In this document: positions 4,079 to 50,335 of the stretch, one piece after another
Position numbering within the stretch: the first letter of the stretch is position 1
Layout of the letters: every line of letters begins with the position of its first letter
Origin: Anthoceros angustus
Lineage: Eukaryota > Plantae > Anthocerotophyta
DNA: 64,000 nucleotides
Direction: 5' to 3'
Assembly: GCA_010909165.1 (NCBI GenBank)
Contig: MU008154.1
Location: 1,229,478 to 1,293,477 of the forward strand
Translations under genes and position numbers: made by a program
Notes under the pieces: model-generated
Told to the model about the DNA's origin: nothing
Databases searched by the model: none
What the model saw: the letters and a program-made list of their open reading frames with translations, nothing else

Positions 4079-7000
4079 ATGATCGCTACCACAGCCTGCA
4101 TCCGGGGTGGCGTGCAGTTGTTGCGTTACAGTCGTGTTCGCCTTCGACTGGAGGTTGGCGCCGGCGGCTCCTTGCAGTCTCAGGCAATCCCAAGGGGGGA
4201 TTGGGGTCGACTGTCTCTTCAGTTCATGGCCACTAAGGTATGGTGCTGTGTTCCAAATTGCTTGAGAGCACGGGATCTGGCTTGCGAGGTTCTTGTCTGA
4301 GCGATTGTTGTGATTTGCAGAGCGGTAAAAAGCGTCAGCAATGGAGAACTGTTCAACAAGACGATCCTCACAAGGTGGTGGTAGCCGAGAGCACCGGTGC
4401 ACCGTTGGAGGAAGCACTTCCAGAGTTGAAGAAACCTCCAGGATTGGCCAAGGTGGAAACGAAGGTAGTCGAGAAGAGGCCTGAGGCAAAACCTGAGACT
4501 GTCAAACCAGCAACTCCAGGAGGAGGAAGTAGATATGTTGCAGCGTCGTCACCGAGAATGTGGGTTGCAAAATCTCCGACACCTGCGGTCCAGCCGGCAA
4601 CCAAGGCAGTGCATACTCCATCCACACCCCGTACTCTGAGCCATGATGCTAAGCTTGGAACCGATGCGGTGAAAGGGACCACGTTGGTTTCGGACAAGCC
4701 GGCACCGAAGCAAGCTGACAAGAACCTGAAGCAATCTGACAAGCAGCAGAACAAGGATTCTGGAGAGAACAAGAAGGCTGCCGTAGCCCAAGCATTAGTG
4801 AGAGCCACTTTCTATCCCAAGTTTGAGAACGAAAAGTCCGATCAAGAAGTTAGGTCAAGGATGATCGAGGTGGTCTCAGCTGGTCAGGGTGTATTGGAGG
4901 TTTCTTTGAAGCACTCGGGATCTCTTTTCATGTATTCTGGTGACAAGGGTGGAGCATATGCCAAAAACAGCTATGGTAATCTTTACACAGCCACTGGTGT
5001 GTTTGTGTTGGGGCGGACGCTTCAGGAGGCTTGGGGTCCACAAGCTGCAAAGAAGCAGCAGGAATTCAACAGATATCTTGAGGAGAATCGGATATCTATT
5101 GCAATGGAGCTAGTGACGGCTGTGTTGGGAGATCATGGTCAGCGTCCTTTGAAGGATTATGTTGTGGTAACAGCAGTAACCGATCTGACTGGGCAGCCTA
5201 GATTCTACTCCGCTCCTGATGTTGTGGCCTTCTGTCGTCGTTGGCGACTGCCCACAAATCACTTCTGGCTGTTCTCCTCAAAGAAGTCTGTTTCGGCCTT
5301 CTTCACAGCGTACGATGCCCTCTGTGAGGAGGGGCTTGCCACCAGTGTCTCTCGTACGCTGGATGAGATTGCAGATGCCTCCGTTCCGGCAACCAAGTCC
5401 CATCAGGATGTTCAGGGAGAAATTCTTGAAGGTGTTGTGGCTCGAGTTGTATCCCCTGACGCATTAGTGCGTATGAAGGAAACAAGTCAGAACCTGCCTC
5501 CTGCTCAAGTGCCTGAAGGTTCAGCGCCCAAGGTGGGGCTTCGAGAAATCTTTGCCGCTAACAAGATCAGTGAGAAAGATCAGATAAAGGCTGTTCTTGC
5601 AGCTGTTGGATCTGATTTTTGCCCAGATCGTTCCCAGTGGCTTAATGAAGGGGATGGCACAGTACAGACTGTGAAGAAGGCAGAGACCACAGCGCTATCA
5701 ACTTTCTTGCAGGCTCAGCCTGCAGATAAAGTGACAGCTAAGGTCCAGGAAGTCATTCGATTTTTGAAGAAGAGAAACATGCACGTACGATTCAAGTGCT
5801 CCCATCATTCTGGTCAGAAAGGGGATGATGATGCTTTCCGCCTAATTATTCATGTACTTTCAGACTCTGTCTTCAGGAGATACCAGAATGACTTGAAGAA
5901 GCACGCAAACCTGTGGCCATTGTACAGGGGCTTCTTTTTGGATGTTAGGTTCTGCGGCTCTGATGTCACCCCATATTCTGCTGATGAAGCTGATGTCAAA
6001 GCCATCACTGACGTGGAGCAAACAGGCACAACTGAGAATTTGATGTTGAAGCTCAAGTTTCTACCTTATAAGCTTCGTACGTTTCTTATCCGAAATGGGT
6101 TGACAACCCTTTACACCAAGGGACCAGCCTCTTATCGGGAGTATTACACAAAGCAGATGAAGAACTGGGGCACATCAGCAGAGAAGCGGAAAGATGTCAG
6201 CGAGCTCCTGAATGAATGGGCGAAGTATATTACTGACAAAACCGGAGGGAAGCAGTTGAGTAGTGATACTTATTTGTCAGAAGCAGAGCCTTTCTTGGAA
6301 GCCTTTGCCCGGCGAAGTGCCAAAAACAAGCAGCTGGTAGGATCTGCGGGCAGTGTAGTCAATGTTGAAGATTTCCTTGCTGCAGAAAGGAGTTCAGAAG
6401 ATGAAATTGGGTTGAGAGATGGGGACGTATTAGACGATAGTTCTTCACCCCCTTCGGCACCGCAACCAGAAGAAGAGGTAAAGGCAAAAGGGTTGTTGGT
6501 CTTTTTCCCAGGAATTCCTGGATGTGCCAAGTCAGCCCTCTGCAAGCAGGTGATCAGCCACAACAGCAATGGGTTTGGTGATGGGCGAAAGGTGGCCACA
6601 TTGATGGGCGATCTTATCAAGGGCAGGTATTGGCAGAGATTGGCAGCAGACCAGAAGAAGAATCCAAATACCATAATGTTGGCAGACAAGAATGCCCCGA
6701 ATGATGACGTGTGGAAGCAGATTGAAACCATCTGTGAGAACACTCAGGCGCTTGGTGTGCCAGTTGTGCCGGAGTCAGAAGGCACTAGTTCAAATCCTTA
6801 TGGTATTGATGACCTGGCTGTCTTCATCTATCGGGTTTTACAGCGTGTTAATCACCCAGGAAACTTGGACAAGAACTCCCCAACTCCAGGGTATGTTCTA
6901 TTAATGTTCTATCACCTTTACGAGGGGACAGATCGGAAAGATTTTGAGGCTACACTGTTGGGAAAATATGGTCGCCTTATCAAGCTTCCCCTGCTGAAAA

Positions 7001-7752
7001 GAGAGAGAGCACCATTGCCCGCAGATATCTCGAATGTCCTCAAGGATGGGATTGCGTTATTTAGGCGGCACAAAAGCAAGCATGGAAAATTGGATGCTTT
7101 GCAGGGAAGCTATAAGAGTGATTGGGTGGCATGGGAGAAGCGCTTAAAGGAGACCCTGTTTGAAAATGCTGCACACTTGGATGCCATCCAGGTCCCGTTT
7201 GAGGAAGTTGCGAACTCCTTTGTCGTGCAACTGAAAGAGGTAGCAACTGGAGACAATCGCATGCATGTGGCTGTTGCAGAGGAGGAGCGGAACTTTAACA
7301 ATGTAACTTTTGCTGCTATTTCTTTGCCACAAGAGGAAATTTTGGCTGCTCTGAGTTCTCTCTCTTTAGCTGATACTACAGTCCAGGAATACCTCTCCGA
7401 CAAGGCCATCGAGAAGAGTCTTCAGAGAGCTCACATCACACTTGCTCATAAGCGAGCACATGGGGTGGCTGCAGTAGCTAGCTATGGCGATGTACGAGGT
7501 GTAAATGTTCCTGTGGAGCTGACTGCCTTGTTGTTTTCAGACAAGCTGTGTGCGATAGAGGCGAATCTGAAGTGTGCCCCTGATCGTGCAATCTTGTCTA
7601 GGAACGAATGGCCTCACATTACTCTTTGGACAGATAAGGGGGTGGCTGCCAAGGAGGCAAATAGTCTTCCCTCTTTGGTTGACGCTGGAAAGGCAAACCG
7701 TTTCCAGTTCCCAACGCCCAAAACTGTGGTGGGACATGTGCAATTCCTTTGA
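4079..7752 (+). CDS. RNL: Plant tRNA ligase (Trl1-type: ligase, polynucleotide kinase, cyclic phosphodiesterase); exons 4079-4237 and 4321-7752
   Basis: RATFYPKFENEKSDQEVR, adenylylation motif EVSLKHSGSLF, P-loop GIPGCAKS, two 2H motifs (HITLAH, HITLWT). Phase-0 intron AAG|GTATGG...TTGCAG joins MATK to SGKKRQQW. Confidence 0.95.
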
Positions 7753-9618
7753 GTCAGATTTGGGGTCACTGTAAAGTTGGGTCTGGCAAGAATTTGACCG
7801 GACTTACGTGAAGTTTCTGAGCAACACTGGGATTGGCAATTGGTGCCTTCGCAGCTAGCTAATGTCTAATCTAGACTTTGGTAGCGGACTGATAACACAA
7901 TTTATTCAGGAGCAGGCAGAGGACCTATCGTAGAGCATGATTGAAAGTTTGGGACGTGCTATGCCATCTTTCCGGAGAAAACTGAAAACAAAGTTTTTGA
8001 GTTGAGAGAGTGACAACAGAGTTTACTGGATTTGAAAGTTCTTTCTGTAACTCTCATGTTTGTTGTGAGCGGCCACTGGAAGAGTTCTTGCGGCTCGGCA
8101 CCTTTCACCCTTATCACTTGCTGCTTGGATATCATGATCAAAGTCCACGGGGCATCAACTAGTCGCTTATCAACTAAGTACAGTGCTCATTTCTATTTCG
8201 CTTTCTGTCTCCTCACCACCCACCATCTCTCGTTGCTCATTCTTCATCTAACGTCTTCCGTGTCATGTATACAGAGTCATTGCTGCATGTACCACTGTAA
8301 ATCTCGTTGGAGGTCTACCTTCCTGAAAGTCCTTCACCCACCCTCGTGTTCTGAAACCGTCACACACGATATGTACGTGAGCTTGTGCTTTTAGTGCAAC
8401 TGGACTGCGGCTGTTGCTCACGGACGGAAGGTCGTAATGTAGAACGTAAGTACATTGCCACGAAAGGAAAAACGTGATGATGCCATCCGACTTTAGGTTT
8501 AGATTTGTAGAGCTCCAGGGAACTCTGCCCAAAAAGTAGGGTATGCCGCTTTTTGTATCCCACGCACGGTATTCTTTAGTAAAAGGCGAAAGAATAGTTC
8601 GCTATGCGTTGAATACGCGACCCTGTAATTGGAGTACAGTGCCCCCGATTATATCGCAGTGAAGGGGCTACGCATACACTGGGAACGATATGGGGTAATA
8701 ATATTCCATGCTGAAAGCAAACCCTGCTCTTGACGTCAGACTGTCCAGCCTTGATTGCGTTTCCTATTGTGTTTTTGGTACTTGACAACTTGTACTATGG
8801 TGTGCCTAAGCTAGTTGCACCAAGGGCATCCACTCCCTTTAGGCACCCCATCTAAGTACCGATCTAAGCGCAGGATGCTTAATCACGACGTTCTTAGTGG
8901 ACTTCAATAAAATTCTTCTTCTTCTATTCCCTCATATGTTATGTGCGCGACACATAGACCTCAGGGGCTGCGGAAGTATTAGAACAGGATCAATTCTCAG
9001 AGCATGTTGCTCGGGGCCAAGTTTAGTGCAGGCCCCCGATGCCAGTGGCACGAAAATCTACAGTCTGTGGATGGAGCTGGGGACACTGGATTCTCATTGG
9101 ATCCTGAATGTTTTCAATCCATGACATAACTACTCACAACGTGGTGTGAAAGCAAGGCCCTCGATGAAAGGAGAAGCCTGAGGTTGGGGAATACTGCCAC
9201 CCTCGGAATCATCAGCGCCGGTGACAACAAAAATGGAACGGCACAATGCAACTCACTGTGTGCCCTCAGGAGGGTCAGACAATCACACAATACTCCCTGA
9301 ACCGCAAGAGAACGAGGATCACATACACGCACATCATCGCCCATCATCAGTGGGTATCTCTCTTCCATGGCTCTGCAGTAGTCGGACGACATCTCCTCTC
9401 TCGGCCGTGGCTGCTTGAGCCAAAAAATGGGGTGGGTCGAAGCGCCTGGAACAGAATTCGCCAAGCAACACCTTCCAGCCTTCCCTTCCAGACGACCCAT
9501 GCCTGACACCCACGCAGGTTGTCACATGGCGTCCTCAACCCAGCAGCACCTGCCAACCTCCCGCGGCAGCATGCACGAATCACAGACTCCTCCTGTGTCG
9601 GGAACAAGGACTCTCCTC

Positions 9619-16760: not shown

Positions 16761-17025
16761 ACATTCTCCTCATTCAACTTGAACTTGAACTTGAACTTAT
16801 GAAGTAGTACAAAGATAGCCCTACTCCATATCATATCTACATACCTGAATAATATATTTTGGCATATAATTTTATTTATTAAATACTTTTATCAATGCTC
16901 CACAAATGATTATAATCGACGGTGAACAAGTTTGATATGTAGAACACTCGTCTTAGGGCAGACTCCCCGATGACGAGATTCTTAGGGTGGTAAGTAGTTT
17001 TGAGAAGTCTTAGAGGACTCCCCGA

Positions 17026-20000
17026 TTTTTTTTTTTTAATTTGGTATTTTGAAAATAAATCAAAACAACCCCGGGGGAGAAATCTTCAGCAAGGGTTCTG
17101 ATTCCCCTATGTTACACATCGTATCATCCCAACAGAAGAGACTTTACTCTTCCCGAGGTCATCCGAGTACGTGCCTAAATACCATCGGTTATGGGACTTG
17201 GGAAGAACTCCTCACCCACTAAAACTCCCCACCTTTACCTTTGCCCGAGAATAAGGGCTGCCATACATTGCTGCTTCGGCTCCAATAAAATCGCCATCTT
17301 GAACCTGTCCGTCCCAAACCAATTGCCTCCCCATCCCCAATGATCGTTCTCACCCAAGAACGCACTCCTGTGGAAGGTCTTCGCATCCTTCCAATAGGAC
17401 CCGCCCCACCAAGATGATGATTGACCATCCCAGTCACCCTTAAGGCGGCCCATATGGTAATACCTCCGCGGAAAAGGGCCACTGACGAAACCCGGTGTCC
17501 CCTTTCTTCAAGGTCCAGAAAGCGGACCCTCTCACGTAACCCCTAGAGAACAACTACTTTATCCTCACCTCCACTGAAAACTGTGAACTCACACTTTGCG
17601 AATGAGCTCTCCCATAATCCTCTGCCGCGCCGAGAGGACGTGGTTGCACTCAAGAAGAAGATGTGCTAAAGATTTCCGATCCGCATTGCGAGAGGGCGCT
17701 CAAGGTGTGTTGAGGCACCACCCCAAACCGAATAGCGGCTCCAAAGATAAGAGCCCTGTTCTAGCTCGAATGACATGAGTAATCGTAGCCGGACATCGAA
17801 TCGGGCGAAGCTCGTGAGATAAACCGACGAGAAGCCGAGAAACCCCTTTGGACATACAAAGGCAAACCGAAGGTACTACTATGCTCGAGTTGGCTCCAAA
17901 GACGACAAAACGGTTTAAGGTGTGACTCAAGACCTCAAACCTCTCCGGGCGAGCCCCAAACCGTTCACCCTCTTTTGCCCGTTATAGACCCAGGTGTGTT
18001 TGTGTCTCTTGTTACGATGGGGTCGGTACTTGAAGAGGTCTCCAACATAGGAAGAGAGTGTCGGGAATTTAAAGAAGGCTCGCCGACCACAGAGGCAAAA
18101 AGGAGTAACCCCAAGCTCCTCAGAAGAGGACCAGACCACCGAGTGGAAGCACCTGGTTTTCCAATTATCCACATGGGCGCCTTGTGTACGAGGGCCCCAA
18201 GCTTCTTTGTCTGCTGAGCCCCAATAATCCCCAAAAGTTCGGCTCCATGAAAGCATGCTGGTAAAATGACAGAGCGCAGTATTGAGACCCGGAATGCAGT
18301 GGGAATCCTCTTAGATTTGAGAACGTGTTTGTACGAAGAGAGGATGCGGGTCCCAAGGTGCAGACGATCCTGGATGATAGTTTTCAGGGACAAACTTTCA
18401 TCCAATACGATGCCCAGATACGTATACTCTTGTACATAAGGAACTACTGCACCAGCCAACAACATAGGTGTCTGTCTAAAATCCTGAATCTGTTGGGGGC
18501 TGCCATGCCACACCGAAACACCATATTTGCTGATGCCGAAAGTCATACCCCATTGTAGAGCCCACGCGGACAGGTGGTCTAGAGTCCTCTGCAGCTCGGT
18601 CGGCGATTCACCCAATACTAGAAGGTCGTCCGCATAAAGGAGGGCATCCAGATTGTACGGCATCCCAGGGACCTCCACACCAACCGGGGAGAAAGTCTCA
18701 TGGGATACCGGTCTCCCTGGCTTTGGCGACACGAATAGGTCGTTGATAAAAACATTGAATAGACAGGGGGAGGCGGGGAATCCTTGTCGTAACCCGCAAA
18801 GGACATCAAAGGGTTCAAAGGTATCTTCCCCGATTCTAACCCTCATTCGGGCCGAGGCATACAAGACCCGGAAGAATGTGAGGGCCGACCCATGCACCCC
18901 GGCTCTCTCCAGCTTATAAAACAATGCCCAGTGGGGCACCGTGTCACAGGCTTTTCGAAAGTCAATATAGGCCACATAAGTTGGGAGCCCAACATTCCTC
19001 CTACGTCCTGCCACCTCCATAGCTGATACCACTTGCGCCATACACTCATTTCTTGGCCGGAAACCCGCTTGACCCGGGTGAAAGAAGTTGGCACTCCAAC
19101 CTCGCACTGTAATGATGATCTTGGTAGCAATTTTGAGGGCCACGGATATGAGGGCAATGCCTCTATAATTATCTGGCAGAGTCATATCTCCCTTTTTCCC
19201 GATGGAGACCACGTTAGCCGTATTGATATGGGCAGGGAATGGGGTGGAGCCACACCTCATTGACATACCGGAGGAAAGCAATGCCCATCTTCGATTTAGG
19301 TGCACAGGAACCACCCCGCACACGGCGGCCTTTGTCGGCTAGCAGGATTCGAAACCAGGCCGGGGGATACCATCGGGCCCCGGGGCCCTATGTGGGGACA
19401 TTTGGTGCAGGGCCTTGCGAACCTCTCCCCAACGAATGAGAGCATTGATCCCTGGAAGGGGGTCAACCGGCGGAGGGGGTGGGAGAGGAGGCAAGGTTTG
19501 TCGCACCCCAACAAGCTTCCGATAATGTTGTAACCAGAAGTTCACAATGGCAGGCTCCGTGACCTGCAACCTGCCATCTTCATCTTGCATGGGCGCCAAC
19601 TTAGAACCCCCATGGACCTTTTTTCCGACGAGTCCCTGTAGCCATCTCCACAGGGACTTATGATCTCTGCGCATCACGAAGCTTTGTCCCAATCGGATGG
19701 ATTTGAGAAACTGGGCCTTGCCCTCTGCCCTGGAGAGAGTGCAAACTCTCTTACAGAGATCCAGCCACGAATCATAAGAAGTTTTCTTATCCACCAGCGT
19801 ACTGCGACGCAACACCTTGTAAGCCGCTTTACGTTGTTTGATGAGTCTTTTTAACTCCTCTGAGAGGTGGGGGCCAGGAGCGGGGGTGGGCTTGGGGGCA
19901 GTTTTAATCCCAAGTTCTGTGGCAATGGAGTTGGAGAGGTCCGAAAAGGAGTCCTCCCCATCGGTCCACCGCAGGGCCTCCCACCGATTATCGCTCAAAA

Positions 20001-21332
20001 TGGTATCTGTATGCGTAGCAATCTTCTTGACCACCACCCGGGGAAGGGGGGCGGGAGAAGGGGCTTGGGGGGCCAATGCCGACAACCTGAAGGACACTTG
20101 AAGGGGCCAGTGGTCAGAGAGATCGCACGACTTCCGCACACGGGGACGTGTGAGTTTGGAGCGGGCACATTCATTAACCCACAGATGGTCGACAGCCGAC
20201 TTAGGGACCCCCATTTTCGAATGAAACGTGGCCGGGTCCCCAAGGGGCCGTAAACCCGAGGGAGGGGTAGGCAGATGAAGTCCCCACTTGTCAATGTCAT
20301 TACAAGGTGTGTTGAAGTCTCCCATAATGAGCGTTGGGCTATCAGTAAATCTGCCCAAGAGTTCTCGAAGTCGGTGCTTGATCTCCTTTCGAGCAGCTAT
20401 TCGAGCATCACGGTGTCGACGTTGCGGGACATATATAGAACCGACAAGCCAAGGGATAGATCCGAAACGACCCCCACTGACCAGGGCAAACACCGAATAG
20501 GGGCTAGGAATCCCAAGGGGGGCCACTCGAAATTCGCTGGACACTACCAAAGCAAGGCCACGTGCACCAATGAGAGAGGGATTGTCAGCGCTAGAGATCG
20601 TCTCGAACCCCGGGAACGCGAGAGGCCAGTGGCCATTCGCTACCCGGGTTTCTTGCAAAGCCAAGATACCCCAGGATCTAGTGGCCATTTGGCTCATGAG
20701 TTCCCTACCCTTGTGACGAACTCCGTTTATGTTCCAAGAGGCAAATCGGAGACTAGGGGAAGGGGCCAAAGCAGAAGGGTCCTTTCGTAGTCGGAGTGCA
20801 TAGGGGACATGAGGTTTAACCCGAAAGGGGCGCGACCTAGGATCTAGCTTCATCCACCGGCGGAGGGCTCCAATCCCGGTGGAAATCCTAAGGAAAATGT
20901 CAAACCTCGTCCTACACTCCTCCCCTGTCTTGGTCTCCGAAACCCGGTCCCACTTCACAATGTTTTGCATGACCCAGATTGGTAGAATGGCAGCCAGTAG
21001 GGTGCCGAAAGCAGACGCAGAGTAGCCCCCCGCGCCCCAAATGCACACCGGAGTAATACTTAGGAAAACGGGGGCAAATGGGCGCAGGAGTAGAAGGCGC
21101 CATGGCGTGGGGGTCTCAAATACAACGGTCACAAAGGGTCCGAAAGTCGAGATTGCGGCTAGCTCGACACGAGAAAAGGGCCGATGTTGCTTCCCCAACT
21201 CCAGAGGAGTAGAGGACCGCGGGGCAACACCGCCTACCCTTAAGCTACTAGTAAGAGACTTGGCTTCGGGACCGCCACGGGGAGGCGTCTCTCAACAAGG
21301 CACGTAGCATATATCTTGTTTTTTGGTCCCAA
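17026..21332 (-). mobile_element. Full-length non-LTR retrotransposon (LINE): APE endonuclease, RT and C-terminal Cys/His motif in one frameshifted polyprotein; poly(A) tail and TSD
   Basis: APE motifs SWNING, LALQET, MGDFN, DHLWV, SDHWP (19339-21198); RT motifs NYRGIAL, QAGFRP, IDFRKA, GLRQG, YADDL, YTYLG (17965-19323); SHLLLEC near 17650-17670; T12 at 17026-17037; frameshifts near 19350 and further 3'. Confidence 0.95.
21252..21330 (-). ncRNA. HDV-like self-cleaving ribozyme (minimal, P4-less) at the 5' end of the LINE
   Basis: Minus strand: P1 GGGACC/GGUCCC; P2 UGAGAGAC/GUCUCUUA; P3 GCC/GGC; L3 UCCCCGU; J4/2 GAAG-C-CAA; J1/2 with AACAAG/CUUGUU hairpin. G1 at 21330 is 2 nt from the TSD. 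Confidence 0.85.
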
Positions 21333-21544
21333 AGGACTCCCCGATGACGAGATTCTTAGAACGGTAAGTAATTTTGAGAAAAGTATCGTGGGAATAGGTC
21401 TCCTTGGCCTAGTGCCCTTTGGTTGACCCCCGTTTTTTTTTTTCCTGCTGTGGATGATGTTTTTTCCATCTCTTTTCTTTCTGCATAAAGTCTCACTAAC
21501 GCTCGTCTTATGAACACCCGGTGTCGGGCACGGTTTATAAAGGT

Positions 21545-21754: not shown

Positions 21755-22920
21755 ATGAATATCAACATGCGTAATGTGAAGTTGCCATCCGGAGGGCCAG
21801 CTGCGACGCTGGCCAAGCTTGCCGTGGTGGGAGGACTGGGAGTGTATGGAGCGTTCAACAGTCTCTACAATGTGGAGGGAGGGCACCGTGCAATCGTCTT
21901 CAATCGAATTGTAGGCATCAAGGACAAGGTGTATCCGGAGGGTACGCATTTCATGGTCCCTTGGTTTGACAGACCTGTTATATATGATGTGCGAGCTAGG
22001 CCACACATGGTGGAGAGTACATCTGGCAGCAAGGATCTGCAAATGGTAATCTACAGGTTACCCCCACTGGTTTTCTTCGCTTCTCTGCCGTGGTCTAGGG
22101 TTTAGGGTGACTTCTTTTGATGGATTCCCATTGATCTGGACAGGTGAGGATCTCTCTTCGTGTCCTGACAAGACCTATGGCGGATATGCTTCCCACCATT
22201 TATCGAACACTTGGCCAAGACTACGCTGAGCGAGTTCTGCCATCGATTGTTCAAGAGACACTCAAGGCTGTTGTTGCACAATATAATGCTAGTCAGCTTA
22301 TCACTCAACGTGAGGTATGTTTCAAAGTGACCAAGCATGTAAGTTTGCTTACTTGTGTGTGGGGTGACACATTGGGACTGTCTCTTGCAGGTTGTGAGCA
22401 GGGAAATTCGCCGAATACTGCATGAGCGGGCTGCAAACTTTAACATAGCTCTGGATGATGTATCGATCACCAATCTCACGTTCGGTAGAGAGTTCACAGC
22501 AGCCATTGAGGCAAAGCAGGTTGCTGCGCAAGAAGCTGAGCGTGCAAAGTTTGTGGTGGAGAAAGCCGAGCAGGACAAGCGAAGTGCGATTATCCGAGCT
22601 CAGGTCTCTGTCTATGTCTCATAGCTGCTGTCAGAAACTTCCGGTCTTACTTGATGCCTGAGTGTTGAGATGTAAGTTTCGGTTATGATGCTGCTGTGTG
22701 GCAGGGAGAGGCAAAAAGTGCACAGCTTATTGGCGAAGCCATATCGAACAACCCTGCATTTATCACTCTCAGGAAGATTGAAGCCAGTCGAGAAATTGCC
22801 AACACTATCTCGACATCCACGAACAAAGTGTTTCTGAATGCCGATTCTCTGCTTCTCAACATTCAGGAGGTGGGGAGTGACGACGGTGGTCAGCTGATGT
22901 CCAACAAAATGAAAAAGTGA
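21755..22920 (+). CDS. PHB: Mitochondrial prohibitin, PHB2-type; exons 21755-22045, 22144-22314, 22391-22603, 22705-22920
   Basis: [21 protein letters not shown]|[52 protein letters not shown]|GEAKSA; GT-AG introns in frame. Confidence 0.96.
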
Positions 22921-37034: not shown

Positions 37035-37322
37035 CACAAATTGCATGCTGAAAAATCCGTACTAAAAATGGCCGTTTTGAAGAGTTTAGGTCTTGTTTAT
37101 GCGTGCAAAAACGTATTTGATTTTAAACTTCACAAATTGCATGCTGAAAAATCCGCACTAAAAACGGCCGTTTCGAAGAGTTTAGGTCTTGTTTACGCGT
37201 GCAAAAACGTATTTGATTTTAAACTTCACAAATTGCATGCTGAAAAATCCGCACTAAAAACGGCCGTTTCGAAGAGTTTAGGTCTTGTTTACGCGTGCAA
37301 AAACGTATTTGATTTTAAACTT
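37035..37322. repeat. 96-bp tandem repeat x3
   Basis: Units start at 37035, 37131 and 37227; units 2 and 3 appear identical. Confidence 0.95.
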
Positions 37323-37964
37323 TATCCAATTCTGAGCCTTCTTAAAAGAAGGTTATTCTCACAACCGGCACGTGTACCAACATTTAGAGTTTTTAGAGAT
37401 TGTTGTAATTCTGGTGCGCAAATTTGTTTGCGCACCAACCTTTCACTCATATCAGTCAACCCTAAGACTATACTCTCGCTCTGGGAATTCTGCAGGACTT
37501 TGTTTATTAAACATTGGGACAATAATATCTTTGTTGACCTGATGCTGTTCTTGATCCGTGTGCAGTGCGAGAATGAGAGTGGTATGGTCTGCACTTGGAG
37601 CTGGGCCCATGCCAAATGTCTCAAGATTCAAAAGATGAAAAGGTTCTCACTACTAGCTCAAAGCTTTAACCACTAGAAAAAAGATGAGGGCTAAGTCAAA
37701 ATAAGGACATATCGACATTAGGGAGGTGCACAAAAAGGGTTGAAAACGCCGAAAGGAACCTTTTAAAACAACAAAAAGATAAAAAATAAATACAAAAACA
37801 GCACAAAATAATACCAAAATTTTAGGGCAAGTGCACGCACTTGCCTCAAAAAATTCATTTTTTTTGGGATATTTTCGTATTTTTAAGATTTTTTGCTCTT
37901 TTTTTCTTTGGATCAACCATCAAGGAATGCACTAGGAGGCATGAACCATATGGGTTCATGCCCC

Positions 37965-38352
37965 TAGGCCCTCCTTGACCCTGGGTGCGCGCACAAGTGC
38001 GCGCACCTGGGCCCCCTTGCCCACTGGTGCGCGCACCTAGGGCCCCTTTGCCCCCTAGTGCAGACACTAGTGCGCGCACCTGGGCCCCCTTGCTCCATTG
38101 TGCACACACTTGTTCACCCAATTGGGCCCCCTTCCCCCCTGGTGTGCGCACTTGTTCGCCCACTTGGGCACCTTTGTCTCATGGTGCGTGCACTTGTTCG
38201 CCCACCTGGGCCTCCTTGTCCCCAAGTACGCACACCTGGGTCTTCTTGCCCCTGAGTGCGCAAACATGTTTACGCACCTAGATCTTCTTACTCATTTTGC
38301 GCAAACAAGCTTGCACATTATCAAGTTGGGTGCGCAAACTTGTTTGCGCACA
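37965..38352. repeat. Array of GC-rich short repeats built on GTGCGC(GC)AC palindromes plus CTGGGCCCC
   Basis: About ten degenerate gtgcgcgcacctgggccccttgccc-type units. Confidence 0.75.
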
Positions 38353-40424: not shown

Positions 40425-43004
40425 TCATCTCTTTCTACCACCACGCTCCTTCAGGCCCAGAGAGACCGTCTCTCCGGGACCTACATTGTAGAACGCTAAA
40501 GAAGCACTATCTTTGAGCACATTCGAGTGAAAGGACAACTTCTGCTTGTTGGCTGCTAAAGATAACTCGCTACCAATTTTCTCCTTCAGACTGCCGACTG
40601 TTTCAGCCAGTGACTGAATAGTCAAGTCCAGATATTGCCCCTTCAAATTGCTGTCTCCCTCCACTGTAGGCACCGAGACGACAATGCGGACAGCTCCCTG
40701 CAACCAAAGCAGATTATTAGAGTGCCTACCAAAGAAGCTTCAAAAGCAACAGATACACAAAAACACGAGATATGCCCAAATACAGTGGGACGCATAAAAA
40801 GATGGTCCAACGCAAGGGGTATGAGAGTAACGTACCGGATGCTGGGCAAGCCATTGGTCCTCCGGAATAGTGTCATCCACCTTCTGCCTCTTGGGTTCAG
40901 GCTCGTCTGGAGGAGGAGGAGGGTCTTCCTCAGGTAGCGGTGGGGGTGGTATTGACATGGAAGGAGAAGAGGAAGGAGGTGGAGGTGGTGGTGGCGGGGC
41001 CGACATTGGTGGTGGAGGCATAGGGGCAAAAGGCGGCCTTGGAAGTGGGAGAGGTGCATACTGGGGCATCCTAGGTGCTGTAGACATGGGAGGAGGGAGA
41101 GACTGAGGCAAAGGTGGAGCAGGTCTGGGAAGCACCGGAGGCAAGGGAGGAGGAAGTGAAGGCCGAACACTAGAGGCAGGTGTAGGTAAAATTGGTGTCC
41201 TTATCATAGAGCTGGGAGGCAGTGGTGGAGGGGCAGGTCCTTGAGCAGTTGACTGTGGTGGGCGTGGAATATTCAGAGCCAGGCCAGGAGGCGGTGGCAA
41301 GGGCCGAGCTGGTGTAGGAGCTAGTTTAGGAAGAGGCGGAGGAATGGGTCCTGGAAGCTGGCGCCCATCTGGACCTACAGCTAGCTTTTCCTTCCCATCA
41401 CCCTGCTCATCAATCATGTTCTGAGCCATTGCCTGATTTGCAGTTCTACTGATACTTCCAGTGTGTCCATCCCAAATAACCTGTTTCGGCTCCTCCTTCT
41501 TCTTCTCAATCTCAGCCTTGACAGCATTGGACACTTCTTCCTCAGTCGTACCAAATATGTCCGGCCGGGTACGAGCAAGACCAACAATATTCCTAGATAT
41601 CTCATCATCTGTTGCTAGAGTAGTCTCCCTAAGCTTCGCCATCATCCTCTCCTTCTGTTCCTTGTACTTGGGATCAATCAGTGAGATGCGCATGTGCTCT
41701 GCCATTTCGTTTATGGAAACAAGCTCCCCAGTGATCGGGGACACAACAAACCTAGTCAGGTCCTTCTCAGCAGGAAGCCTCTCCTCCGGCCGCTTCCAGT
41801 TCTTCACAATCCGCATAGGGTGGTCATCCTCATCCATGGGCTGAACCCCGTTCCCACTACCCAGCGTGGTAGCCCTCAGGCTATCCTCTACAAGCTGAAT
41901 CTCCTCCTCGTCCATCTCCATCTCCACCTCCTTCCCAGCCTCAGTAACCTCCTCCTCCGCCTCCTCCAGAGCCAAAGCCTTGCTCCGCCTCACCACCTCC
42001 TCTACAGTCATAGGCCTCGGCAGCTCATCCTCATCCTCATCAAACTCAATCGTCTCTACAACTACAAAATCGTGCCAATCAATAAGTGCCATCTGCATCC
42101 GCTCCTGCTCAATCTCATCCTCCGCCTTCTGCCTAGCACGCTCCCTGGACCTCTCCCACTCCAACCTGGACAGACACCTCTCCAAAACCGCCGTCTTGCT
42201 GGAAGCATCATTCCTCAGCTTCTCCACAAGCCCCTTGGGGGGCATCAGCACCTTAGAATAGGCATCCGCCAGGGCTGTGAAAAATGTGAACATGCTATGC
42301 GTAGGCTTCAAAAAATGAAACTGCGGGTTCATGTGCTCCCTGCTAGTGAGCCCTGTCAAAAAGCTCTTCCCATTCCTTGCAACAAATTGAGCCGTCAGCT
42401 TAATAATATCAAGATCCAGCCCCGTCAACCCATCCGGCAGCCGCACCGTGTACTGCTCCGGTTCAGGCTGCTCTGCAGGCTTTGCAGCAGGTTTCAGTTG
42501 CACATCTGCAATCAACTTGGCCGCCCCAGAAACGACCGCCTGAGGAGCTGCCCCGGCCTGCTCCGCAGGCTTCGCAGCTGCACCCTGCTCTGCCGGCTTC
42601 GGCGCCCCAGCTGCAGGCTGCGCGGCCGCCTGCCCCTGAGCTCGAGCCTCCGCCACCCTGTGCTGGTAGTATGCATGGTACGGGTCTGTGGATGTCAAGA
42701 AGTTGAACTTCACGTTGTTCTTCTCATTTGCCAGAATTCTCTTCTCGAACTCCGGACCATTCCGCGCCACGAACTGTGCTGTCTTGTCTACGATGCTCCG
42801 GATGTCGGGTGGAGGATGGATCATCCCGATGGACCTGGTCTGAGTAGCCACCCTCTGAGGAGGTGCCGGAGGCGCCTCCCCATTTTCCTTCTCGCTTTCA
42901 TCGACTCCATCGTCCTTGGCGGCGGGGAGCTGCGACGGCGGGAGCGGACCTACACCGTCCGCCGAAGGTGGTGGCAGGGCGAGCACCTCGCCAACCACCG
43001 GCAT
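40425..43004 (-). CDS. SF3A1: Splicing factor 3A subunit 1 (PRP21/SAP114); exons 40836-43004 and 40425-40697
   Basis: Two SURP domains (IVDKTAQFVARNG; IIKLTAQFVARNG), IDWHDFVVVETIEF, EHMRISLIDPKYKEQ, Pro-rich region and C-terminal ubiquitin-like domain ending LKERGGRKR. Confidence 0.96.
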
Positions 43005-43354
43005 GGTGCCGACTTGCACAACTACGAATCCAAAGGAATACGCTCCGCTCGAGCCTTGTGCTCCGAAGTCGGACCTAGAATTGTCATTTCTCAACCCTAG
43101 CCGAGGTTAACTAACCATGGCTTCCGGTTAACTAACCGCACGCGGTTAACTTGTCCTGTCTTCGCGAGCGCGGACCTGGAGTCCTGGACGCGGCAATGGC
43201 GGAATCGGGCGCTCTGACGGCGCCGGGAGCGATGTGCGGAATTCTTGGCGGGAGAACATTCATGTCAGCATTGTGTGCAGGCTGCGGTGCAGGAATGCTG
43301 ATTTGAGTGCTCTTTTGCCAATTCTGGTGGATTGGGAAGGCTTCTCCGTCTGAT
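43005..43354. promoter_or_regulatory. Compact bidirectional promoter SF3A1/NHX with telo-box-like AACCCTAG and repeated GGTTAACTAACC
   Basis: Start codons diverge 350 bp apart; motifs at 43093, 43105-43116, 43126-43137, 43143-43150. Confidence 0.55.
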
Positions 43355-46300: not shown

Positions 46301-48208
46301 TTATCTCGTTAACTATTATCGTGAGCCCGCCACGCATATCCCAATGAATCATCAGCATGCTCTGTGGTACAGTGGTACGAGAAAATCGATATTTGAAGTT
46401 AATTTGGCATTCATAGAGGGGTTATCATGTCTTCTTCACTGGAAGCAGCGAGCATGTTTCAGGTCTGCGAGGAGCTATGGCCTTCGCCCTCTCCATGCAG
46501 TCTGTTACAGACCTTCCAAAGCATGGCCGAGTTCTACTGACGTCTACATTGTTCACCATTTTTTTCACTGTAAGTTTGTAGGAGATGTGGTTGTCCAATT
46601 TCAATGAAGTTGATTGGGGTACAGCCATGCCAGTGTGATTGGGAAGCTAAGAAATTGCTTTCATCCGGTATTCGATCAGGTATTGCTGATTGGAGGCTCT
46701 ACGTCAAACATGCTGGAAAAGTTAGAAATTGAACTTCATGGCCCATCAGGGCATGACGAAGAGGTAACAGAGCTGGGAACGTCGTTAGCTAGATTGGGAT
46801 GCTGTGACTTCACTGATCTCGACGTTGGGTTGAATTTTCTGTGCAGATAGAGCTACCGGAGTCACCCACCACGGTATGTTTACAATACCAACAAAAGCTT
46901 GGGTGTGGCTAGTTGCTGGTCGATATCTTACCAATCACGGCATGTCGTGGCTCTTTGACTCTTTAGGGTCCAGAGATTGAGGCCACAGAGGATGAGAATG
47001 AGGATCTGGAGTACGAGGATGCTTCAGGACAGCTGCAGATATTGACTGCGCAGAAAAAGAAGATTCAGAGAAAGCTTCGTCAACTCAAAAATGAGTGAGA
47101 GATCCAACCTCTGCTTTTAGCAGCCATGGATCAGCTAACTGTCCAGACTAGTGTGTTTATTATTCACTCTGGAGTGTCGTTTCCTGCTCAGCACATCGTT
47201 TGCTACTTTGGATAAGAAGTATCTGAAACCCTTTTTCGCTGCTAATAATCAAGGGCAGCCAGATTTGGAGAGCCCGACTTCACTTCAGCAAGGTAGTCCA
47301 CGAAACCTGCAAAACTGAGGCAAAGATAGACACTGAAGAGTATATCATGTTCACCTGTTTCCGGCACTGATCCCCAAGATGAGCTTGTCCATTGTTTCCT
47401 TGTTCCCAACGTAGATGGCATGAAGCAGATGCAGGATGCAGAGTTAGACGACATGCAGCCCATGCAGAAGAAACCTCCTATCCAGAGCTCACCGCAGAAC
47501 GCACAAAACTGGGCTGACATGCAACGTGCAGAGGGTGTGCAGTCAGACCAGTACAGTGGTCCAAGGAAGTACTCAGATTCGAGCAACCGAAACCCAACAA
47601 GAAACGACCAAGTTATGCAGAGAATGCCTATCAGCACCGGCCCAAGGAATTCCGACCACAACTCCCAAAGGCCTCCAGACAGATATGACTCCTACGATCA
47701 GAGGGGCGCAGACAAATACAATGCCCCGTCTGGACAAATTGTCCAGAAGAGTGGAGATAGATACAATACGTCCTCGGAGCAGAATGTGCAGAGGGGTGCA
47801 GACAGATACAATGCCCCGTCTGGGCAGAATATCCAAAAGGGTGGAGACAGATACAATACCTCCACGGAGCAGAAGATTCCCGACAGGTTTAGCAACTCGG
47901 AGCAGAGCATGCAGAGGAGCGGTGACGGGAGCCAGGATCAGAGGTACAGCCCAGAGAGATACAGTGCGCGGGACAGGCCGCCGGAACGAGCCTCCGACAG
48001 GCTCTCAGCTTCCAAGATGGGTCCACCAAAGGAAGAAGAAGAGGAGGACGATATGGTGCCACCAGAGAAGATGGAGAGGAGGAGCTTGCTGTTAAACCCA
48101 GGGAGCTTTCCCAAATTTCCAGACAGACCGTCCATGCTGTCGTTGCCTGACGTAGCCAATGTAGCAAACCGCCTGAAACAAGCTGTGAACAAGAACTGGC
48201 CCCGCTGA
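43355..48208 (+). CDS. NHX: Endosomal-type Na+(K+)/H+ antiporter (NHX5/6-like, CPA1) with long repeat-containing C-terminal tail; many exons
   Basis: [21 protein letters not shown]|[47 protein letters not shown]|[19 protein letters not shown]; last exon 47415-48208. Confidence 0.92.

Positions 48209-48679: not shown

Positions 48680-50335
<1,656 letters not shown>

Follow-up and report, generated by a model that had tools for sequence, protein, structure and literature searches.

A predicted P4-less HDV-like ribozyme motif at the 5' end of a LINE insertion in the hornwort Anthoceros angustus

A 64,000-nt stretch of the genome of the hornwort Anthoceros angustus (assembly GCA_010909165.1, contig MU008154.1, positions 1,229,478 to 1,293,477 of the forward strand) contains a long interspersed nuclear element (LINE) insertion of about 4.3 kb, the first 79 nt of which can be folded like ribozymes of the hepatitis delta virus (HDV) class. 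Here we describe the insertion and its 5' motif, the occurrence of the same fold in related LINEs, and its relation to known ribozymes. The whole stretch is referred to as the window; all coordinates are those of the window, and the LINE and its ribozyme-like motif are read on the minus strand.

The LINE insertion and the fold at its 5' end

The LINE consists of a ribozyme-like 5' leader, a single open reading frame (ORF) encoding an apurinic/apyrimidinic endonuclease (APE) domain and a reverse transcriptase (RT) domain, a 3' untranslated region (UTR) and a poly(A) tail (Table 1). Pfam recognizes both domains on the minus strand (Exo_endo_phos, E = 4e-12; RVT_1 reverse transcriptase, E = 4e-26). 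The element is flanked by a perfect target site duplication (TSD) of 11-12 bp, the final T of which is ambiguous. The target is a tandem pair of units of about 55 nt (...TTCTCAAAAYTACTTACC...CTAAGAATCTCGTCATCGGGGAGTCY, at 16960-17013 and 21334-21385 on the minus strand), with the insertion point at the end of the first unit. Because the target is itself a tandem duplication, a third, imperfect copy of the TSD is found at 16960-16976. The initial annotation of a plant LINE that opens, right inside its TSD, with an HDV-like double pseudoknot is supported.

The copy in the window is dead, having one in-frame stop codon and a decayed C-terminal part. The first in-frame ATG of the ORF is found only at 20973, and the alignments with related proteins begin at query residue 47-51, some 25-30 codons upstream of this ATG; the original start codon would either have been lost or never have been ATG.

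The 79-nt motif (21330-21252) follows the order P1-P2-P3-P3'-P1'-P2' of a nested double pseudoknot, in which all 6 + 8 + 3 pairs close. The sequence strings and the P1, P2 and P3 pairings named in the initial annotation are all present at the minus-strand places given there. The P1' strand is joined to P2' by only 8 nt and helix P4 is absent, in agreement with the earlier description of the motif as P4-less. By analogy with the relatives described below and with published minimal ribozymes, G21267 in this junction is read as P1.1, pairing with the third L3 base (C21281), and the linker in the place of P4 as AG (2 nt), or AAG (3 nt) with the mismatched A included. The CCAA that follows is read as J4/2, with C21263 as the presumed catalytic cytosine. 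The nested-only minimum free energy fold of the motif is unremarkable (z = -0.79), as expected for a fold that is a pseudoknot.

The first base of P1, G21330 (G1), is separated from the TSD by 2 nt (TT), as had been noted, when the TSD is counted as 12 bp, and by 3 nt when it is counted as 11 bp. Extra T residues (2-3) at a LINE 5' junction resemble the untemplated or micro-homology bases common at such junctions. A 7-bp P1 register starting at U21331 was proposed by the descriptor, and was set aside as it leaves no P1.1 pair.

The descriptor search suggested in the initial annotation was carried out on both strands of the window. A strict P4-less form (L3 UCCNCGN, junction G..CNAA) gave one match, compared with none in 100 dinucleotide shuffles, and decoy descriptors in which A, G or U replaced the catalytic C matched nowhere. 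A looser descriptor that tolerates P4 hairpins of at most 140 nt would match by chance about 0.75 times per 128 kb, so that the argument is carried by the position of the motif at the element end and by its presence in related LINEs.

The fold in related LINEs

A profile search with the 619-aa N-terminal piece of the LINE protein recovered 549 LINE proteins, the best of which shares 32% identity. Contigs were sought for twelve of the 549 proteins (three had no DNA), and 16 relatives' contigs were scanned. The fetched contigs mostly have the length of a LINE (4-6 kb), and a terminal poly(A) is present in several. A metagenome scan with the window protein retrieved only distant LINEs (L003-L008) through one motif, and was uninformative.

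In relatives with 24-33% protein identity, the same core is located at the extreme 5' end and on the coding strand only. The whole fold is present in four lineages including the window element, and part of it in two more (Table 1). The general descriptor matched nowhere else on either strand of the 16 contigs, and in the ten contigs scored against shuffles (48 kb) there are three real matches, compared with 0.63 expected anywhere by chance.

The helices co-vary among these lineages. Within each lineage the strands pair completely (100%), whereas strands swapped across lineages form about 3/7 pairs in P1 and about 2/5 in P2. Two to four standard pair types occur at six of the seven P1 positions and at all five P2 positions compared, and the first P3 pair is G-C in some lineages and A-U in others. 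L3 reads U-Y-N-N-C-G-U in the five related lineages, with positions 1, 5, 6 and 7 (U, C, G, U) invariant, and the six lineages agree on C-Y-A-A as J4/2. In each of the five relatives, the nucleotide that directly follows P1' has its partner in the third position of L3 (A-U, G-C, C-G, G-C and A-U). In the window the corresponding pair, G21267-C21281, is formed only in the 6-bp P1 register from G21330; that register, with G1 and a single G-C pair in P1.1, was the one given in the initial annotation and fits the P1.1 co-variation of the relatives. The annotation had also called for a check of P1 and P2 co-variation among copies: it holds across the distant relatives, while the window yielded no copies of the same family to compare. 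The comparative evidence is good for an HDV-type structured RNA, and for homology of the window motif to it.

This bears on the view that the motif is a chance arrangement of short complementary segments, of a kind always findable at an element end. Minimal HDV descriptors are indeed prone to high false-positive rates (PMC10879173), and a loose descriptor gives dozens of matches per window. Given the absence of strict matches in the shuffles, and a motif whose conservation and co-variation extend to five other lineages, where it is confined to 5' ends and to the coding strand, coincidence is a very improbable explanation.

In one family, found in several samples (L014:1-264, and L015-L019), 28S rRNA sequence lies upstream of the element and P1 opens directly behind "...GATTCCCACT", indicating that integrated 5' ends in this LINE group coincide with the predicted cleavage site. 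About 14 bp of rRNA are repeated at the 3' junction of this family (protein P0026, many metagenome samples). By its sequence, it is an APE-type rDNA-specific LINE with a predicted 5' HDV-like ribozyme. Two of its contigs begin with what we take to be Illumina adapter sequences fused to 28S rRNA (L014:1-70, L015:1-62), and these fusions look like an assembly artefact in the public data. Two other relatives, in which no HDV-like motif was found, also lie at RNA genes: L022 (1-130) is inserted in 18S rDNA (flank ...CAACACGGGAAAACT), and L020 (480-660) lies just downstream of a U1 small nuclear RNA (snRNA)-like gene (AUACUUACCUGG ... AAUUUUUGG).

The rDNA-inserted family is also informative about the possibility that an internal promoter sets the 5' end of the LINE, the fold serving in protein binding or ribosome recruitment with little or no cleavage. 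There are precedents for such roles, as PMC3185411 describes the 77 nt of L1Tc as both internal promoter and ribozyme, and the R2 protein is bound by R2 ribozyme folds, which may have an activity similar to that of an internal ribosome entry site (PMC6765202). However, the positions conserved here are those of the catalytic core (U..CGU in L3, C-Y-A-A in J4/2), and the rDNA-inserted relatives, whose P1 lies exactly at the junction, must be freed from an rRNA co-transcript. An internal promoter with a non-cleaving fold is accordingly considered improbable.

The window LINE is tied to the group of its relatives by a shared 3' UTR motif (GGGG..UUUUAGUGGGU), which lies just after the ORF in the window (17230-17214), L001 (L001:4518), L010 (L010:4071), L011 (L011:4296) and L012 (L012:4365). 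Several relatives have a downstream partner, CCCACACUACC. The motif is kept at the DNA level among LINEs of only about 30% protein identity, and is probably part of a stem recognized by the reverse transcriptase of the element. Searches of PDB and ESM Atlas found only LINE-1-like or R2-like RT, and gave no clade assignment. In a FastTree phylogeny of 52 proteins (with X in place of the stop codon in the window ORF), the window element is on a long branch beside P0012, and the ribozyme-bearing lineages are scattered.

Table 1. Features of the LINE insertion in the window (minus strand) and of the corresponding 5' motifs in related LINEs
Feature	Position	Strand	Sequence or remark
LINE insertion, about 4.3 kb	17026..21332	-	bounded by TSD and poly(A); Pfam Exo_endo_phos, RVT_1
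5' TSD copy	21333..21344	-	TCGGGGAGTCC(T); 21344-21334 without the ambiguous T; repeated after the poly(A) at the 3' end
TT between TSD and G1	21331..21332	-	extra 5'-junction nucleotides; alternatively U21331 = +1 of a 7-bp P1 (U-G)
P1, 5' strand	21325..21330	-	GGGACC; predicted cleavage site 5' of G21330
J1/2	21295..21324	-	30 nt, weak hairpin of -2.6 kcal/mol
P2, 5' strand	21287..21294	-	UGAGAGAC; 8 bp with GUCUCUUA, one G-U
P3, L3 and P3'	21274..21286	-	GCC (21286-21284), UCCCCGU (21283-21277), GGC (21276-21274)
P1, 3' strand	21268..21273	-	GGUCCC; pairs with GGGACC
Junction of P1' to P2'	21260..21267	-	GAAGCCAA, 8 nt; parts assigned by analogy
P2, 3' strand	21252..21259	-	GUCUCUUA
ORF, N-terminal part	19342..21198	-	APE endonuclease domain at about 20742-20110
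In-frame stop codon	19339..19341	-	separates APE and RT parts
ORF, RT part	17965..19323	-	same frame as N-terminal part; downstream region decayed
3' UTR motif	17214..17230	-	GGGGAGUUUUAGUGGGU; DNA sequence kept in distant relatives
Poly(A) tail	17026..17037	-	12 nt
3' TSD copy	17014..17025	-	directly after poly(A); 17025-17015 without the ambiguous T
Relative L001	from contig base 1		P1 CCCAGCA/UGCUGGG; P2 GUUCUCC/GGAGAGC; P3 GCC/GGC; L3 UCUUCGU; long P4; J4/2 CCAACG
Relative L012	from base 49		P1 GGGCUCC/GGGGCCU, G1-U wobble; P2 UGGCU/AGCCA; P3 ACC/GGU; L3 UUCUCGU; P4; J4/2 CCAAA
Relatives L014-L019 (one family)	at 28S junction		P1 CCCCCCC/GGGGGGG; P2 GGCACCGCUG/CAGCGGUGCC; P3 ACC/GGU; L3 UUGUCGU; P4; J4/2 CUAA
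Relative L013	contig starts inside P2		P1 5' strand off contig; P2 UGGGGG/CCCUCA; P3 ACC/GGU; L3 UCCUCGU; GGGCAAC then 5-bp P4; J4/2 CUAA
Relative L002	from base 237		P1 5' strand not found (best candidate with one mismatch); P2 AACAGGC/GCCUGUU; P3 ACC/GGU; L3 UCUACGU; P4; J4/2 CUAACG

Comparison with known ribozymes and the absence of P4

The genomic HDV and CPEB3 ribozymes have the same topology as the window motif and the same L3 and J4/2 signature (in HDV, L3 UCCUCGC... and J4/2 C75-G-A-A), but differ in having P4, a G1-U wobble and a two-pair P1.1.

The ribozymes of R2, RTE, Baggins and L1Tc/ingi elements occupy the first ~80-180 nt of the element and fold into nested double pseudoknots in which J4/2 supplies the catalytic C (PMC6765202, PMC4035085); the window motif has the same position and predicted topology, and its catalytic C is presumed. 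In those elements, cleavage 5' of +1 frees the element RNA from a co-transcript, and integrated 5' ends coincide with the cleavage site (PMC6765202, PMC4035085). The window element differs from them in its plant host, in being an unplaced APE-type LINE with a single ORF, and in its lack of P4 and its 30-nt J1/2. Among the papers searched, none described an HDV-like ribozyme for a bryophyte or for any plant LINE, yet PMC4035085 cites a 2009 survey as including plants.

The theta ribozymes of gut Caudoviricetes (drz-Mtgn-1 type) likewise lack P4, which is dispensable in minimal forms (PMC10879173). The theta list in that study, part of which has been validated by assay, includes P1 helices of 6-7 bp, P3 GCC/GGC or ACC/GGU, L3 U-CC-NCGY, P1.1 GG, GA or GC co-varying with L3, and J4/2 CUAA, CCAA and similar; both 6-bp P1 helices and G1-C closing pairs occur. 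The GCC-UCCCCGU-GGC block and the CCAA J4/2 of the window are found verbatim in the list, and with the conservation of these loops in the relatives this upholds the claim of the initial annotation that L3 and J4/2 fit the HDV class. The differences are that J1/2 in theta ribozymes is 1-3 nt (ten times longer in the window), that the L4 linker is 5-8 nt compared with 2-3 nt, that P1.1 has two pairs rather than one, and that theta ribozymes occur next to phage tRNAs, often at the tRNA 3' end, rather than at the 5' end of a eukaryotic LINE. Nearly 99% of the minimal forms are from Caudoviricetes phages, and the human, mouse and protist genomes searched gave no matches (PMC10879173). The window element fails the theta descriptor, with which it has only the architecture in common, and is outside the motif as defined; it would be a separately derived P4-less variant in a eukaryotic LINE lineage.

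These comparisons suggest that the first 79 nt of the LINE are probably a derived, P4-less member of the HDV-like (delta) class. The motif is very likely a real or once-real ribozyme, and the LINE lineage would have inherited it from ancestors with a conventional P4-bearing 5' HDV-like ribozyme. We infer that the motif may cleave itself, and that the P4-less form, rather than a P4-bearing parent, may have been the working one.

Several points weigh against this reading. All five relatives have a stable P4 hairpin (31-97 nt, -8 to -47 kcal/mol), which is lacking in the window; P4 may have been deleted in the dead window copy alone, instead of being absent from a working family. P1.1 consists of one G-C pair followed by an A-C mismatch, where classical members have two pairs, and the linker is shorter than that of the theta ribozymes. 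G1 closes P1 with C instead of the classical G-U wobble; this wobble is not universal, since G1-C occurs in the theta list (PMC10879173) and the mapped +1 of L1Tc-type ribozymes is C1 (PMC4035085). Further copies of the family were not found within the window, and word-indexed protein searches with the 619-aa piece and a 255-aa N-terminal piece gave no same-family match. L009, L010, L011, L020/L021 and L022 have no convincing HDV-like motif even with relaxed L3; their loose matches look like noise, and their 5' ends may be incomplete. The covariance-model search suggested in the initial annotation was negative, as Rfam matched no ribozyme family on the window stretch at gathering thresholds or at E <= 10. 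This test has little power, because the P4-bearing forms of the four relatives searched were also missed.

The most direct competitor is that the working ribozyme of the family has P4, and that the dead window copy lost the hairpin cleanly after insertion, leaving a crippled remnant. It is consistent with the P4 hairpin between P1' and P2' in every relative, with the stop and the decayed C-terminus of the window copy, and with a linker shorter than in the published minimal forms examined (PMC10879173). On the other hand, the loss is exact, since CCAA is intact and still joined by a short linker to the G of P1.1; all 17 pairs of P1, P2 and P3 are intact despite decay elsewhere in the element; and the 30-nt J1/2, unique to the window (3-5 nt in the relatives), suggests a remodeled ribozyme over random damage. 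A post-insertion relic is considered unlikely. The exact loss, the 17 intact pairs and the remodeled J1/2 favor a working variant, for which the case is about evenly poised; that a hornwort LINE family still active, or active until recently, uses the P4-less form as its working ribozyme is put forward more tentatively, at slightly less than an even chance.

If the P4-less form does work, the LINE would need no precise start site of its own, as transcripts would read in from upstream. The read-through RNA would fold into the double pseudoknot (P1, P2 and P3 with the one-pair P1.1), and the chain would be cut 5' of G21330 by the J4/2 cytosine C21263 with the help of a metal ion bound in L3. The resulting 5'-OH RNA would then template target-primed reverse transcription at a new site. 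Cleavage at this position predicts that the 5' ends of full-length insertions lie at G1 or no more than a few bases from it, which is the case for the window copy. Promoter independence and cap-independent translation, both proposed in the initial annotation, would be further possibilities.

The neighborhood of the LINE includes, at 21755-22105 on the plus strand, a first exon that is presumably prohibitin-like, as judged from its translation, and whose start faces the 5' end of the LINE from about 420 bp away. As a speculation, divergent transcription from the promoter of this gene could read into the LINE.

The wider window and significance

Elsewhere in the window, a full-length U5 spliceosomal snRNA gene is encoded at 8508-8622 on the minus strand (Rfam RF00020, 91 bits). 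An uninterrupted ORF of 1170 aa (4240-7752, plus strand) has a match to RNA ligase (RNA_lig_T4_1) below the curated cut-off, and two further long ORFs have Pfam matches to the splicing factor PRP21/Surp (40740-43094, minus strand) and to the tubulin C-terminal domain (49220-50335, plus strand); by their matches, all three look like ordinary host genes. Short tandem-repeat arrays are found at 37035-37322, 37953-38224 and 47699-47874, with units of 96 nt, ~42-73 nt and 45 nt, respectively, and are unrelated to the LINE motif.

The release of LINE RNAs from read-through transcripts by HDV-like ribozymes is established in animals and trypanosomes, and the known P4-less forms come almost exclusively from gut phages. 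The finding overturns no established concept. It would place LINE processing and minimal HDV-like forms together in a land plant, and would show a natural series from P4-bearing to P4-less forms within one LINE group. If the reading is true, no natural HDV-like ribozyme in the published lists examined has a more compact junction than the window motif, which would also be the first minimal form linked to a retrotransposon of a eukaryote. For the study of ribozymes, it would offer a testable limit case for the shortest replacement of P4. The element itself would belong to a wide APE-type LINE clade without a name, in which some members are specific for rDNA and a 5' HDV-like ribozyme is combined with a conserved 3' UTR stem. 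For the study of transposons, this combination would serve as a marker of true 5' ends in a LINE clade that is poorly described and partly targets rDNA.

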